Positions 2,082-8,552 of a DNA stretch of 8,552 nucleotides are shown here, in pieces. A program made the position numbers and the translations under genes. The stretch is from Zygophlyctis sp. KS116 (Eukaryota; Fungi; Chytridiomycota). The stretch spans positions 1 to 8,552 of the forward strand of contig BAAFSQ010000375.1 in assembly GCA_054661495.1 (NCBI GenBank), given 5' to 3'. A model generated the notes under the pieces. That model was not told where the DNA came from. It saw only the letters and a list, made by a program, of their open reading frames with translations, and did no database searches. Numbering within the stretch: the first letter of the stretch is position 1; each line of letters begins with the position of its first letter.

Positions 2082-3354
2082 TCAACAATAAACCCAATCT
2101 TCAACTTTCGGAAAAAGTATGATCTTAATTATGCCTGCCTCCGTAAAACCCTACGCTGTAAATAACCTGATTATTTCATCAGACTCTTTTAGAATTCTTG
2201 ACCTGACAGTATCAGAAACATATAGTTGCTGGAGTTTTAAATACATGATTTTTTTTACAAGATATGAGACTTCCAGCTTCCAGACCTTATTAATAGCTAG
2301 TGCTTATGTAAATCTACAAAATCTTTTGTATGTGAACTACTACATGATTAAGCCTTCGAGTTAGCATAAAAGCTAACTAAACCTCTTCTATCGCATACAA
2401 CACTGCCGATAAATGTAAAACAGTGAAAGTTAGTTTCGCAAACTCTGCCAGGAAGCTGTCATCCTCTATCAATTTTCTTTTTTCATTAATATTATTGTTA
2501 ATTATATCAAATGAGTCCTCTGGGAAGAGTTTTAATTTTGGGGGGTCTTTCTAACAATTAGAAACTCAATTTACATGAGAAGAATAATCAATTTTCCTAA
2601 TTCATGTATGGAAATTTTCATAGACTTTCAAATACAATTCTGTGTTTAAATGCCAGATTATTCCTTCTAAAATTTTTGAGTAAAACTGATTTTGACGCAT
2701 TTCTTCAAACGACACATTTTCATGATTGAAGCAAGTCGCGATAAATCTTTAATTAAAACTTAATTACATACCTCTCTAAAAAACCATCATGATTTTTATC
2801 ATTTATTTGAGAAATTTGATCATTGTTTCAGGGTGAATGAAACCGACAAAGTTTAAAACTACAGTTGGAATCTCATTCACACCCTTAGTCTTAATTACAT
2901 TTTTAAATTTTCCACCGCCGTGGAAATTCAAATACATAGTTCTGGCTTTGTTTTCATCCAGTTTCAATGATATATTCTTACCTTTAATTGAATACAATCT
3001 CTGAAAATAGTTTCAGCTTCGTTCGCCACATGAGGCAGCTCTCCATTGTTAATGCATAATTGACTTGTAAGGCCTTCTAGATTTCCATCTAAAAAAACAA
3101 ATTTACTTAGATTTACTTCACTTCCTGCAACCAATTTGGATATAGAATTTAGTGATGACGTTAATGCTTTTAAAATTGTTTTTTTGGTACTCTTTTTGCC
3201 ATTAGCAATTTGATCATAGTACGAACGAAAGTATTGGTATTAAGCCTGCTAATATTGCAATTGGATTTACCGCTAATGATGCACCTACTGGTTATGTTAT
3301 AATATTACTAATCTTATTGACTAGTTCTGCTGTAAGAGATCCACAACAGTGTTG
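2082..3354 (-). pseudogene. DUF3987/YfjI-like P-loop helicase pseudogene with probable C-terminal winged helix
   Basis: Ordered motifs on the minus strand across frameshifts: GASLAVNPIAILAGLIPILSF; degenerate Walker A GKKSTKKT (3177-3200); DGNLEGLTSQL; Walker B-like HVANE (3018-3032, D>N); RTMYLNFHGG; LNFVGFIHPETM; DGFLERY (2768-2788); VLHLSAVLYAIE; C-terminal IIRLFTA..TEAGII. Confidence 0.7.
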
Positions 3355-4154
3355 AATTTGGGGTACGGCTCGCCGGAGGCACTTTGACGTTTATGTGGAT
3401 TATGAAGATAAACGATTACACTTTGAACATTCGGCACCAACATGTACAAATGGATACACCTAATTGTCTTCCAAAATCTACCGTTTTCATTCGTCGATCA
3501 AGAAGAAAATAGAGCTAATTCAAAACTAAAACCAACTTGTAAGCAAAAATTCTCCCAAACGTGTTTGCTCTCATTTTTGATGGTTGGACTGCTGGTGATA
3601 CTCATTTTGTTGCCATATTCGCATCATTTATGCAACAAGTGCCAGTATTTGTAAAAAAGGACAAAGATGTCAAGACGACTCTCCTTAAAGCAATGTCACC
3701 AATGTAAGATGAAACTAGTCAAGACGCTGATATGCACCAGCTATTTATAATCTCAACACTTGCTACATATGGCAAAAAATTAGATAATGTCCGCGCATTA
3801 ATTGGAGATAACTGCAGCATCACATTGGGTGCTTTAGTCATATTTTAAATCTAGCCGTAAAAAAGGTTCTTTTTGAAAAAACCAAAATATGAAGGATTTA
3901 ATCGCTAAAGTTGCAGAGTTGATGCGTGTGTTGAATACTAGTAAAGGGGCAGGTCGTCTCGGTCAAATTGCGCATCTCGCTGCTGTTAAAAAAATGAAAC
4001 TAGATGAACTTCGACATATGATATGTTAGCCAGATTAGATAGATTAGCTCATGTGCTTCAAACATTATCGCTTGAGAACGCCGTAGCCTATAATATGCCA
4101 TATTACGTTGAATATTCAGCCATCAAGCCTGGTGCAATTGGGTGGGATTAACCA

Positions 4155-4188
4155 AATAATGATTTATTTGATAATAATGATTTATTTG
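4155..4188. repeat. 18-bp-period tandem duplication inside the hAT remnant
   Basis: AATAATGATTTATTTG at 4155-4170 and 4173-4188 (IMIYL-IIMIYL). Confidence 0.85.
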
Positions 4189-4321
4189 CAAAATGAAAAC
4201 ATTATTGTGGCGGATGCAAGCAAATGGTTTGATGCCATTATCAGAAATCATCTTTCTATGGGCTTCTATCTTTCTCATGAAGCTGCCCTTGTACTACATA
4301 ACCCAGATTTCTTAAAAGCTG

Positions 4322-4336
4322 TAACCCTAACCCTAA
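4322..4336 (-). repeat. interstitial telomeric tract TAACCCTAACCCTAA (2.5 units) inserted in hAT coding sequence
   Basis: 15-nt perfect (CCCTAA)n. Removing 4324-4336 restores AAA GCT GTA GTT AAA ATT CAA (KAVVKIQ). Confidence 0.9.
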
Positions 4337-4436
4337 GTTAAAATTCAAAATAATGCTAGCTATGAACTTACTGACGATGAACGAATTATTGTATAGTCTT
4401 TGAAAGTAGGTTGTGTTCAAAAGCCTTCGCTATTTC

Positions 4437-4589
4437 ATTTCCTTTGCTTATATTGTCAAGGCTTTTGGTGGTCAGAATGATGAATGTCTAAAGCCTAAAA
4501 TGGTTGGATATTTGTTGGAGTATCTGGTATCGTTTGGTTTGGTTGCAAATTATGCGAATGAAACCGCTGCCAATAGTATGAAGGCTTGA
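4437..4589 (+). pseudogene. unidentified coding fragment
   Basis: Reads SFAYIVKAFGGQNDECLKPKMVGYLLEYLVSFGLVANYANETAANSMKA*. It is protein-like and unrelated to the hAT sequence upstream; family not recognised. Confidence 0.3.
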
Positions 4590-4593
4590 AATG

Positions 4594-4604
4594 TAACCCT
4601 AACC
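4594..4604 (-). repeat. short interstitial telomeric tract TAACCCTAACC
   Basis: 11-nt perfect (CCCTAA)n immediately after the 4437-4589 fragment. Confidence 0.8.
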
Positions 4605-4719
4605 TGCTGAACTATGACATGTACTCCTCCACCTGAACCATGACACGGACTTAGACCAGATCCTCCAATAGCAACATAAGCCTACTCCATCCAATAGACC
4701 TTCTTACTCAGGATGAATA

Positions 4720-5950
4720 TTTCAACAGAATATGTAGCGCATTCCCCAGTAAAGGGACATCTTACCCATTAATCGTAGACTTAATATAGCTGAAACGATT
4801 ACTCTTATCATGGGTGAACATAACATACTTAGTCTTAGTAATGGCATTTAATCTTTTCACTATAGAAGCTTTTAAGTGAGGTTGAATTTTAAATAGTTCT
4901 CAAGTGGTAATAGGTGCTGGTTCATTTAATATCCGTTCAACAACAGATTCACTATCTAGTTTCGTGCTATTTGCATTTTAAGTTTCTTTGGATCTATCCC
5001 ATATACCTTTTTTGTATTTATTCCCACTGATGCTATATTTCTAGATTGATTCGCTAAATCATCTAATCTTATTCGCTTAGTTGAAAATGCCTCGTTTTCT
5101 TCCAAAGCTAAGAATACTTGTCCATTACCTAAAGGTACAGTATTTGATCCTGTTGCTGGAGATTTATTTGGTGTTTGGGAACGCTGATTATCTCTAGTGG
5201 GTCTATGTTCATGATATCTAGCTGGCGCATTGCAATTACTAGAATAGTGTCCCATTTCATTGCAATTATAACATCGAACTTCTTCCAATTGTCGTGGTAC
5301 CTTCTGCTTATTTATCATGAGAGCTAATGATCTAAATTGTTGCGCTAATTCATTAACATGCGAAGCTTCTGCGAATTTTGTTGTCAACTTGATCTATCTC
5401 TAACCTTTTCCAAAGTTTCTTATTCAATATTTATAGCTGATCGTTTTAAATCATCTAACTCTGCTGTTTTACTTTAGACGTCATTGTATGTCTTTAATGT
5501 TTCGTTTCTGATACAAATCCACCATATTTCATGATCAATTTGATGTTATGTCTTCAAATAGATATCTTATAGTAATTCAGCAGTATACATGTTATCAGGA
5601 ATGTGCGATAAATATTTGCGATGACGTAGATTGAAACAAAGTCAGAGTTTCATTATTCTCCGGTCGTAGCTGAGCCAATTCATAAAAGTTATAATTCTTT
5701 TTGTCTGCCTTTATGAACCCGCTGTATCTTTCTTTCAGTGCTTCAATCCATTGGTCATTTGTCCAGTTTAATATTGTTTTGTCCAAACTTTTTTTATACT
5801 GCCATAACGAAGCTGATCCAGATTATAATGCTATGAATAAGAGTTGCGCTTGCTATTCTGTCCAGGCATTTAAGAGCATAACCCTAAATTTCTTCATTGC
5901 CTTTAAACTTACGAAGGTTATCCTTGAGTGGTTAACTTTATATCTGCCAT
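4720..5950 (-). mobile_element. Ty3/gypsy-like retrotransposon 5' part: degraded gag and start of aspartic protease
   Basis: ATG at 5950 (MADIKL), then KFKGNEE, LLNAWTE.QAQLLFIAL.SGSASLW and WIEALKERY (retrotrans_gag-like). CCHC knuckle CYNCNEMGHYSSNC at 5232-5273. Then ILNEPAPIT..ELFKIQP and YIKSTING.DVPLL../ATYSV (eroded protease active-site region). Confidence 0.8.
5879..5887 (-). repeat. short telomeric tract TAACCCTAA inside gag
   Basis: 9-nt perfect match located at a frame change between FKGNEE and LLNAWTE of the minus-strand gag. Confidence 0.55.
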
Positions 5951-6696: not shown

Positions 6697-7898
6697 ATGC
6701 CTCCAAGAAAAACTAAAAATAATGCTGCTTCCGGAACTACTGCTTGTAGTTCAGTTGCAGAATTTCCATTAGCTTCGTCAATGGAGCAAATGGAAATCGA
6801 TCAAGTTGAATATCTAGCACCCCCCGAGGTCGCAGTGTTAACGATCGTACCAAATTCCGCTGTTCAGAGCTCTACAGTACCTGCAGCGACGGAAGAAAAT
6901 AACCCCCCTGTGCCACAAAGTTTTACAAGTGGCGCAGAAAGTGTGCCACAAGCCACTCAAGTTCCTCAAAGTTCAGTTGGGTCAATGGGATACCGCTCTG
7001 CAGCTCCGCTGTCAGCTGGATCTATGGCCGCTAACTCTTTCCCGTCTTACAGATCAGGGACTTATGCATCTCAACCTGTTGTGGTGCAGACAGCTCAAAG
7101 ATGGGACGGACTAAAATGGGAGTTGGGAAGAAACCTGGTTAGTCATTTGGACGAAGTTAATAGACTAAGTTTATAGAAAAATTTCTGCTCAGGCTCTCAC
7201 TAGAGAACAGGCCGTAGAATATTTTCTAGATTCGCTTACCCCGCCAATGCAGGAAGTCGCTCGATTAAACGAGACCACGACAAATTCCTGGGCTGATTTG
7301 GCAGCAGTCCTAAAACAGGCCTTCCACTCACCTAATGACATAACGGGATGAAGAGCTATAATAACTAAAGTTAATCAAGGGCCACGTACCTCCATGCAGT
7401 TTTTGGGTGATTTGATGAAATTTCACCGAGAATGGGAACCACACCTTACAGCAGAAGAAATTCTTCAAATGGATCAAGCCTGTATAACAGCTTTACTCCA
7501 TCAGGGTTCCAGAAGGACAACTAAGATTGCTTCTGTATTTCACGAAAGAAGCCCTCAAGCTACCTGGTGTGAGTATGTGAATCACTTACTTACGAAGATA
7601 AGACAGGACGCACGGGTGGAAAATGTTACACGATTAGATGTGTCAAACATTAACCAAAACCGTCCATGGGAAAATAAGTCTCGAGGAATAGGTGACTCTG
7701 GGTATCCTAGCCCACCAAGTCGTTATGGAACGGCACCTTACCAAACCAGAATGTGTCGAGACTCCCCCAATTGTAATCGACGTGGATGTCGATTTACACA
7801 TGAGAGTGATCTTAATCGACCACGAAATATGACCTACATGTTCCATTTGCGAACGTCCAGGCCGCGTAGCAGAAAAATGTTTTGACCGTCGACCATAG
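6697..7898 (+). mobile_element. Ty3/gypsy gag (pseudogenised by stops and frameshifts)
   Basis: ATG at 6697, 57 nt after the PBS, followed by a low-complexity N-terminus. Capsid-like SWADLAAVLKQAF...VNQGPRTSMQFL. CCCH finger at 7754-7801; degenerate CCHC CSICERPG(R)VAEKC at 7839-7880 in a shifted frame. Confidence 0.85.
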
Positions 7899-8552
7899 GA
7901 AAACGGCGAGAAAGAAGAAATAAAAGACTTATCTTCTTTACTCGAGCCTTTTAAAATGAGTCCACAAAATAGAGTTACCCCATATCCTGTCCTTGTCGTA
8001 GCTCAGTCAAGTCAGGATTCCCCTGTCTTTGTCGTCCTACAGTTAAGTAAAGTGAATGTTATTACTTGTATGGACACAGGAGCCGCAGTCAACTGCATAT
8101 CTAAAAAGTTATGGGAATACCTTAAGATGTTACCCAATGTCACAATAGCACAAGCTCCAAGAGTCCAATTGACCTCTTCTAACCTGCTAACAATGGAAAT
8201 CTATCATGCCAAGAGTATGTTAGAATACCTATAAGTCTCGGTAATAAGACATATCCACTTTCTTACCCCTTTTACTGAGATAATATCTTTTGAACGAACA
8301 TCTTTATCATACGTTATACGATTGTTAACGTAGTCAAACTGAACACCATAATCTTTCATCCAAGAAAACCCATTCTTTGCTATCGACCAGCTGAATCAAG
8401 ACTGTATCTTTGGGTATCCAGCCATGAGACGTCGTAAGATTGACCTAATAAACAGCAGAGAATGTCTAATGATTTCTAATAAATATGGGTTTAAAGAAGA
8501 TATACCATATTATACTAAACCCAGTTACGAGGGACAAAGTGTATACTTACAA
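7899..8552 (+). mobile_element. Ty3/gypsy pol 5' end: retropepsin aspartic protease, disrupted; runs off the window
   Basis: TCMDTGAAVNCIS (catalytic D at 8073). After an 8-nt duplication: ANNGNLSCQEYVRIPISLGNKTYPL. After a ~109-bp insert: PFFAIDQLNQDCIFGYPAMRRRKID. Confidence 0.88.
8261..8371 (-). mobile_element. inverted fragment of a different retroelement protease C-terminus inserted into the protease gene
   Basis: Minus strand reads GFSWMKDYGVQFDYVNNRITYDKDVRSKDIISVKGVR, matching the retropepsin tail pattern 'lG..Wl......Dw....l'. Confidence 0.6.

Follow-up and report, generated by a model that had tools for sequence, protein, structure and literature searches.

A 13-nt tract of pure telomere repeat, ACCCTAACCCTAA, interrupts the relic of a hAT transposase gene in the window (the whole 8,552-nt stretch analysed here, contig C375 of a 12.7-Mb assembly of 1175 contigs), and in the reading that we favor, with modest confidence, telomerase lengthened one of the two ends left by an internal double-strand break, and that end was afterwards joined back to its partner with TA as a 2-nt overlap. 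Telomerase is normally kept off internal breaks, and healing a break as a telomere loses the chromosome arm. To our knowledge, evidence for telomerase in ordinary repair comes almost only from mammalian genome comparisons. The site is a base-exact natural example in an early-diverging, chytrid-like fungus from freshwater. Because the protein alignment anchors both flanks, one can read directly where the break lay, which bases were added, and how the ends overlap. The tract and its two flanks are as follows.

4324 to 4336, plus strand: the 13-nt insertion ACCCTAACCCTAA, placed by the sequence, a deletion scan, and the contigs of sequencing runs X2, X3, and X4
4322 to 4336, plus strand: the telomeric run in register, 15 nt (2.5 repeats), whose first two bases, TA, are the end of the hAT codon GTA
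3430 to 4323, plus strand: upstream part of the hAT relic, corresponding to about residues 32-343 of a 471-aa ORF on contig C292 and ending in ...HNPDFLKAV (tblastn, frame map, and translation)
4337 to 4409, plus strand: downstream part of the hAT relic, reading VKIQNNASYELTDDERIIV, a stop, and then SLKV, and taking up the protein with no residue missing

The tract sits between codons GTA and GTT of the relic, in the middle of the 8.5-kb contig and within the remains of a gene, and shifts the hAT reading by +1. The inserted part amounts to 2.2 repeat units, or 2.5 when the in-register bases are counted; the C-rich telomere strand is the plus strand at 4324-4336, and the G-rich strand, TTAGGGTTAGGGT, is the minus strand. 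The tract could equally well be placed 1 nt to the left, at 4323-4335. A sequence-only reading of this DNA had proposed a pure telomeric insertion at exactly these 13 positions, and both the sequence and the translated flanks agree with it: 4201-4323 translates into ...HNPDFLKAV, and 4337-4393 into VKIQNNASYELTDDERIIV followed by a stop. The sharing of TA between the left flank and the repeat register, which it had also noticed, is a real 2-nt overlap at the left junction that brings the run to 15 nt. On the primer side, the 3′ end ...AAC has 0 nt in register with the repeat, against 2 nt (TA) at the far junction. The same reading saw no target-site duplication, and we find neither a duplication nor a palindrome at GCTGTA/GTTAAA in the window sequence.

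The host of the tract is a relic and no working gene. The segment 3430-4409 matches residues 32-367 of the intact 471-aa hAT ORF on C292 (L009) in tblastn (E=4e-40), the frame map shows multiple stops and frameshifts, and the relic ends at 4409, with the last ~105 residues, including the dimerisation domain, absent. The colinear hAT transposase of the sequence-only reading thus holds up to 4409, and the copy itself is truncated and decayed. Pfam gave no matches for the relic pieces, and because these are too short for it, we take the hAT identity from the paralogues and from named homologues. Database homologues of the C292 ORF carry PF27039 or zf-BED domains, those from Phytophthora are named “HAT C-terminal dimerisation” or “BED-type domain” proteins, and the intact paralogues give weak Pfam matches to Dimer_Tnp_hAT (E=0.036-0.05). 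The C292 ORF (1189-2601, minus strand) is open, has ENA metagenome proteins 70% and 65% identical to it, and may be an active or domesticated copy. It adjoins a dienelactone-hydrolase gene, and the best named relatives of a host gene beside it are from chytrids (Spizellomyces, Boothiomyces, Kappamyces, and Globomyces).

Comparison with other hAT copies shows the tract to be an insertion. When the genome was searched at the protein level, hAT homology turned up at 16 further places, and tblastn shows that the copies on C1066, C622, C186, C292, C180, C309, C159, and C584 keep the same spacing, H.P.F...(V/I)(V/I)K(I/A)Q.... In a MAFFT protein alignment that took in 12 database homologues, the first window piece ends at column 449 and the second starts at column 450, and all 15 other hAT sequences (paralogues of the same genome together with metagenome and Phytophthora homologues) are contiguous across these two columns. 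A MAFFT DNA alignment put the 13-nt gap in the wrong place; the position is fixed by a codon-anchored deletion scan, in which frame-restoring lengths of 1, 4, ... 19 nt at 74 start positions were scored against seven paralogues, and the best deletion is 13 nt starting at 4323 or 4324. The restoration of the frame on removal of 4324-4336, read earlier from the sequence alone, is therefore also the top result of the scan, and the accompanying claim that no bases were lost is borne out by 15 hAT proteins that run uninterrupted with no codon gone. This zero-loss insertion is a point for the telomerase reading, as at least eight paralogues and the 12 database homologues read ...F..AV/VKIQ... ungapped. 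At the DNA level, the site reads GCTGTAGTAAAG in C186 and GCCGTGGTCAAAATTCAAAAT in C159, from which we conclude that the relatives held no pre-existing CCCTAA; the hexamer occurs at the site in 0 of the fifteen paralogues and homologues, in agreement with the earlier statement that no repeat had been there to slip on. The other hAT copies, intact ones included, are free of the tract, and VKIQ aligns immediately after ...AV, so that neither of the two outcomes named in advance as speaking against the insertion is what we see.

The empty site is predicted from paralogues rather than from an orthologous allele. The sequence-only reading expected such an empty site to turn up, and it was not found in this genome, in JGI metagenome contigs, or in three Logan samples; nor did the presence/absence polymorphism that it anticipated appear among those three samples (X2, X3, and X4). 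No near-identical DNA copy of the relic occurs in the genome, where the two short matches are both to the neighboring foreign fragment described below, and a pattern fitting both filled and empty alleles gave 0 matches in the JGI metagenome contigs, a collection that may not include the records of this genome. No paralogue spans a 20-nt telomeric run on C660, and none spans any of the other telomeric runs within the 169 kb sampled. One further hAT copy, on C440 (L018, 1494-1557), is ~89% identical to the C1066 copy and breaks off at the codon of the window's insertion (...PDFTNGI); TAACCCTAA lies 55 nt beyond this break, a coincidence that we estimate at ~10% by chance.

Several other origins were tried for the tract and rejected. 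An intron is not supported, as no GT..AG arrangement restores the frame, and the footprint of an excised DNA transposon would leave a duplicated flank or a palindrome, neither of which is present. A decayed long telomere array does not fit flanks that are coding sequence. A transposon terminus is rejected because the flanks of the telomeric runs in the local sample all differ from each other. A fused or internalised chromosome end is excluded because both flanks belong to one hAT copy, and a retroelement relic of the Pyricularia type fails likewise, the flanks being adjacent codons of a single hAT gene with no duplication. Finally, a search of the window against Rfam returned no known RNA, so the window is not a telomerase RNA gene.

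The tract is real DNA in several samples, as it is spanned without difference by Logan contigs of three runs from three studies, as listed here.

Run X2: contig over the tract of 1326 nt, depth 209
Run X3: contig over the tract of 1806 nt, depth 77
Run X4: contig over the tract of 320 nt, depth 4.6

Since the contigs of all three runs carry it identically, the tract is not an assembly artefact, and since X4 differs nearby, it is older than the split of X4. A chance match, local slippage, or an error of assembly or sequencing is very improbable as its source and is largely refuted. This reading can draw on the fact that telomeric 10-mers overall are no commoner in the genome than reversed controls, and, for slippage, on a TAACCC hexamer that lies ~20 nt upstream in hAT codons. 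However, comparison with 15 homologues shows an insertion, the three independent assemblies agree, and slippage on TAACCCAG would need extra steps to yield what is observed. The expected number of exact CCCTAACCCTAA in the window is 0.02, and that of a 15-nt run such as this one is ~0.02 per window or less. By arithmetic, 13 nt of random filler have a probability of ~2e-7 of being telomeric, whatever the register or strand. The exact 15-mer of 4322-4336, TAACCCTAACCCTAA, has 6 copies in the genome against 1 for its reversed control. Single CCCTAA hexamers number 8 in the window against 3.7 expected, a difference that is not significant alone.

On the telomerase reading, a double-strand break would have occurred between 4323 and 4337 in a hAT copy that was already dead, and the minus-strand 3′ end ...TTTTAAC would have been extended by telomerase with TTAGGGTTAGGGT(TA), which corresponds to roughly one complete copying of the RNA template and part of another. 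End joining with TA as the 2-nt overlap would then have reunited this end with its own partner, and the C-strand would have been filled in, with neither side losing bases. That there was a break, that telomerase acted on it, and that the steps came in this order is what we infer from the junctions and from what surrounds them. Several points count against this reading. The primer-side end ...AAC has no in-register base, whereas flank bases are in register in 67-80% of informative mammalian loci (PMC2246262); a direct repeat nearby suits templated copying in cis; the telomere repeat of the organism has not been seen directly; the genome-wide count of telomeric 10-mers is no higher than that of the reversed controls; and no empty allele was found. 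Of the earlier proposal that the bases were added de novo, the purely telomeric nature of the insertion stands, while addition by telomerase is the probable route and copying of a nearby template is another.

The case for such copying lies in the sequence immediately downstream, where two further features adjoin the relic.

4410 to 4590, plus strand: sense fragment of an unrelated multi-copy ORF family, represented by a 518-aa ORF on C226 and a copy on C53 (blastn and pairwise alignment)
4594 to 4604, plus strand: another telomeric run, 11 nt long, TAACCCTAACC, bordering this foreign fragment on its right

The second run begins 270 nt downstream of the tract. Together with the two bases before it, this run (4592-4604) matches 4320-4332 exactly, so that TGTAACCCTAACC stands twice as a direct repeat of 13 nt. 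The hAT relic is joined to the foreign fragment at 4409/4410, and the homology of the fragment is continuous across 4565/4566, to ~4585. A variant contig of X4 (depth 4.6) joins 4409 to 4566; it is missing the 156 nt of 4410-4565 and keeps the 13-nt tract, and the left edge of this polymorphism is the hAT/fragment junction. Given that the homology does not break off at 4566, a deletion in X4 is a likelier origin of this form than an insertion in the window.

It is unlikely, in our estimate, that the tract is a templated patch copied from another internal telomeric run. In that event, a 3′ end ...GCTGTA would have annealed by TGTA to 4592-4604 (or the reverse), copied ACCCTAACC, slipped back on TAACC to copy CTAA as well, and been joined, which is the pattern of end joining of a putative polymerase-theta type or of the synthesis-dependent kind. 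The exact direct repeat of TGTAACCCTAACC is what such copying would leave, telomeric runs cluster locally elsewhere in the genome as well (five within ~800 nt on C137, and two 10 nt apart on C590), and repair of the patch type is found right beside the tract, in the foreign fragment joined at 4410 and the 156-nt variant of X4. Set against this, two rounds of copying are needed, the switch between them must fall precisely where the template run stops, and the non-telomeric part of the shared 13 nt is TG only, a 1-in-16 coincidence. Templated copying also leaves unexplained the origin of the first runs and the genome-wide bias in the register of their 3′ ends, to which we return below.

The window as a whole is a patchwork of several dead mobile elements, with a base composition of ~35% G+C throughout. 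The family of the foreign fragment consists, on C226 (L003, 1013-2566, minus strand) and C53 (L002), of the 518-aa ORF, for which Pfam finds no match, and an upstream 98-aa ORF with a GAGKT motif. A segment of ~67 nt at 4661-4727 has ~20 times the depth of the surrounding contig in X2 (4170 vs 209) and in X3, and many contigs diverge at both of its edges; from the raised depth and this divergence, we take it to be a very high-copy short repeat. A 341-nt X2 contig (depth 51) is a diverged copy of 2810-3338 in which 2893-3008 is replaced by 32 nt starting with GGTAACCCTAAG; here too, an indel distinguishes two copies and a telomere-like snippet lies where the pieces meet. On the minus strand, 4959-5387 holds a Gag-like ORF with a CCHC zinc knuckle (Pfam E=4e-6), and on the plus strand, 6697-8234 holds Gag/protease-like ORFs with a CCCH-like motif and a weak aspartyl-protease match.

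The telomeric runs were surveyed across the genome by searching for the six registers of the telomeric 10-mer, with reversed motifs as the control. Summed over the six registers, the telomeric 10-mers number 384 and the reversed controls 426, which is no excess overall, and the telomeric signal lies in distribution, length, and register rather than in the total count. The 10-mer CTAACCCTAA has 4, 34, and 72 matches in contigs C1-C96, C97-C299, and C300 onward, whereas its reversed control, AATCCCAATC, has 41, 32, and 23 in the same classes (chi-square p=1e-12); on estimated class sizes, the control is evenly spread, with 7.2 per Mb in the large contigs, 7.9 in the middle class, and 7.7 in the small ones. 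The depletion of CTAACCCTAA in C1-C96 (4 vs 41 for the control) is explained only in part by stop codons in two of its six frames. For the 12-mer TAACCCTAACCC, 20 of the 22 matches fall in C300 onward, compared with 3 of 10 for its control (Fisher p=0.001).

Merging overlaps by hand gives about 166 maximal runs of 10-20 nt among the matches listed, a table that may include copies by descent, as with two identical 15-nt runs 3 kb apart on C340. Among these matches, runs of at least 10 nt number 9, 57, and about 99 in the three classes, which corresponds to densities of 1.6, 14, and 33 per Mb in large gene-rich, middle, and small contigs. Their lengths, again among the matches listed, fall from ~80 runs of 10 nt through ~40 of 11 nt, ~20 of 12 nt, and 8 of 13 nt to 2 of 14 nt, beyond which there are 7 of 15 nt, 4 of 16 nt, 2 of 17 nt, and one each of 18, 19, and 20 nt. 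The runs of at least 15 nt thus number 16 among the matches listed, 15 of them in small contigs; a random model would make 15-mers ~0.1% as frequent as 10-mers. The window itself has three runs of at least 10 nt in 8.5 kb, and in a local sample of 155 kb, the telomeric unit forms 10 such runs, compared with 0-3 each (mean 0.6) for nine hexamers of the same composition. As the flanks of the runs in the local sample all differ, the runs are not the end of a transposon.

The ends of the runs carry a further signal. On the G-strand, 34 of the 86 runs of at least 11 nt among the matches listed have a 3′ end in ...TTAGG (p=5e-7 against 1/6), as do 8 of the 16 runs of at least 15 nt among the matches listed, and 26 of the 46 runs of at least 12 nt among the matches listed end in ...TTAG or ...TTAGG. 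The G-strand 5′ starts of runs of at least 12 nt, among the matches listed, are near uniform across registers. Among short runs of equal composition in the matches listed, TTAGGGTTAG occurs 37-44 times against 17 for GTTAGGGTTA, and TTAGGGTTAGG 19 times against 6 and 11 for its neighbors of equal composition. Read from the primer side, the tract of the window opens with TTAGGG, and no other start is as common among the short runs listed. All these register statistics come from the hand-merged table of matches listed and may include copies by descent. The 3′ bias matches what would be expected of a reverse transcriptase that stops at a template boundary, for example that of a template 5′-CCUAACCCUAA.

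A further proposal, which we judge rather improbable, is that end joining took up ready-made telomeric nucleic acid as filler. This might have come from extrachromosomal telomeric DNA as a fragment, from the cDNA of a telomeric RNA, or from the telomere-like 3′ tail of a heavily 5′-truncated retroelement that targets telomeres. Such capture would account for a tract that is pure telomere repeat with no register on the primer side, other DNA has been captured by end joining in the same region, and fungal telomere-associated retroelements do leave internal telomere tracts, as in the MoTeR relics of Pyricularia (PMC8381367). However, random telomeric fragments would have both ends in all six registers equally, whereas the G-strand 3′ ends show a strong bias to ...TTAG(G). 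The tract has no retroelement sequence next to it, and the ceiling of 20 nt on run length suits short synthesis better than the sampling of long arrays.

Short interstitial telomeric sequences in primates, rodents, and the horse were inserted at double-strand breaks, with telomerase inferred as their source (Nergadze et al. 2007, PMC2246262; Santagostino et al. 2020, PMC7215372); their flanks may be changed or unchanged, and flank bases are often in register (PMC2246262; PMC7215372). The tract described here resembles these in that exact repeats have been inserted internally, at a place where homologues have none. It differs in its length of 2.2-2.5 repeats, below the threshold of at least four repeats applied in the mammalian surveys, which yielded 79-250 loci per ~3-Gb genome (PMC2246262; PMC7215372) and whose threshold is arbitrary by the authors' own account (PMC7215372). 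In further contrast to the mammalian loci, no run in this genome exceeds 20 nt, the runs of at least 10 nt reach ~33 per Mb in small contigs, the empty site comes from paralogues, and the primer-side register is 0 nt. Experimental evidence that telomerase can act at internal breaks comes from cell culture, in the insertion of telomeric sequence in MLH1-deficient, telomerase-positive human cells (PMC5388398) and in neotelomere formation at Cas9 breaks (bioRxiv 10.1101/2022.10.31.514589). These share with our reading of the window the action of telomerase on an internal break, although the cultured-cell events are cytological or amount to chromosome healing and are normally suppressed, whereas the window has a 13-nt scar between partner ends.

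Among fungi, Pyricularia has short internal telomere tracts, catalogued at 2-4 units, in unstable transposon-rich DNA, which have been ascribed to retrotransposon insertion into telomeres, to telomere internalisation, or to chance (PMC8381367; PMC7367193). Unlike those tracts, the one in the window is flanked by adjacent codons of one gene, and because of this, the Pyricularia routes are excluded for this site. With filler and templated insertions at end-joining junctions, it has in common a short insertion at a rejoined break and an overlap of 1-4 nt, and the 4409/4410 junction is of the same type; ordinary filler, however, is nearby or random DNA that has been copied, whereas the filler here is pure telomere repeat. 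Break-site telomeric insertions are already known from vertebrates, and telomere relics have been catalogued in one fungus. In the limited literature covered, we found no report of break-site telomeric insertions in chytrids or other early-diverging fungi. If confirmed, the genome-wide pattern would differ from the known cases in being shorter, far denser, and readable in register.

We raise, tentatively and with some doubt, the hypothesis that telomerase of this one chytrid lineage acts routinely on internal breaks in repeat-rich DNA, adding about one template length (10-16 nt, typically with ...TTAGG as its end) prior to end joining. The 20-fold gradient in density, the tail of lengths up to 20 nt, and the fixed 3′ register together suggest a process frequent enough to be studied in this lineage. 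If it is indeed routine, the ~160 scars would be a natural record of break repair that reads out the boundary of the telomerase template, and they might mark transposon DNA, or help to silence and fragment it. A transformable chytrid could show directly whether telomerase has a role in ordinary break repair.

The genome has a TERT gene, whose RNA-binding domain is recognized on C66 (82 bits). In the one chytrid checked in the literature, Batrachochytrium dendrobatidis, the telomeres are TTAGGG (PMC11797018). Since the assembly is without a telomere array (no exact (CCCTAA)3 in the register searched, and a longest run of 20 nt), the organism's own repeat is presumed rather than seen. A candidate template site of the telomerase RNA is CCTAACCCTAA at C64:32122-32132 on the minus strand, in a large gene-rich contig of the class in which the control otherwise outnumbers telomeric 10-mers 10 to 1. 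Two arrangements read from match coordinates alone are also of interest: at C738:204-223, two abutting copies of CTAACCCTAA stand out of hexamer phase, as if a unit of template length had been added twice, and at C826:94-124, TAGGGTTAGG is followed head-to-head, after two bases, by CCTAACCC... for 19 nt.
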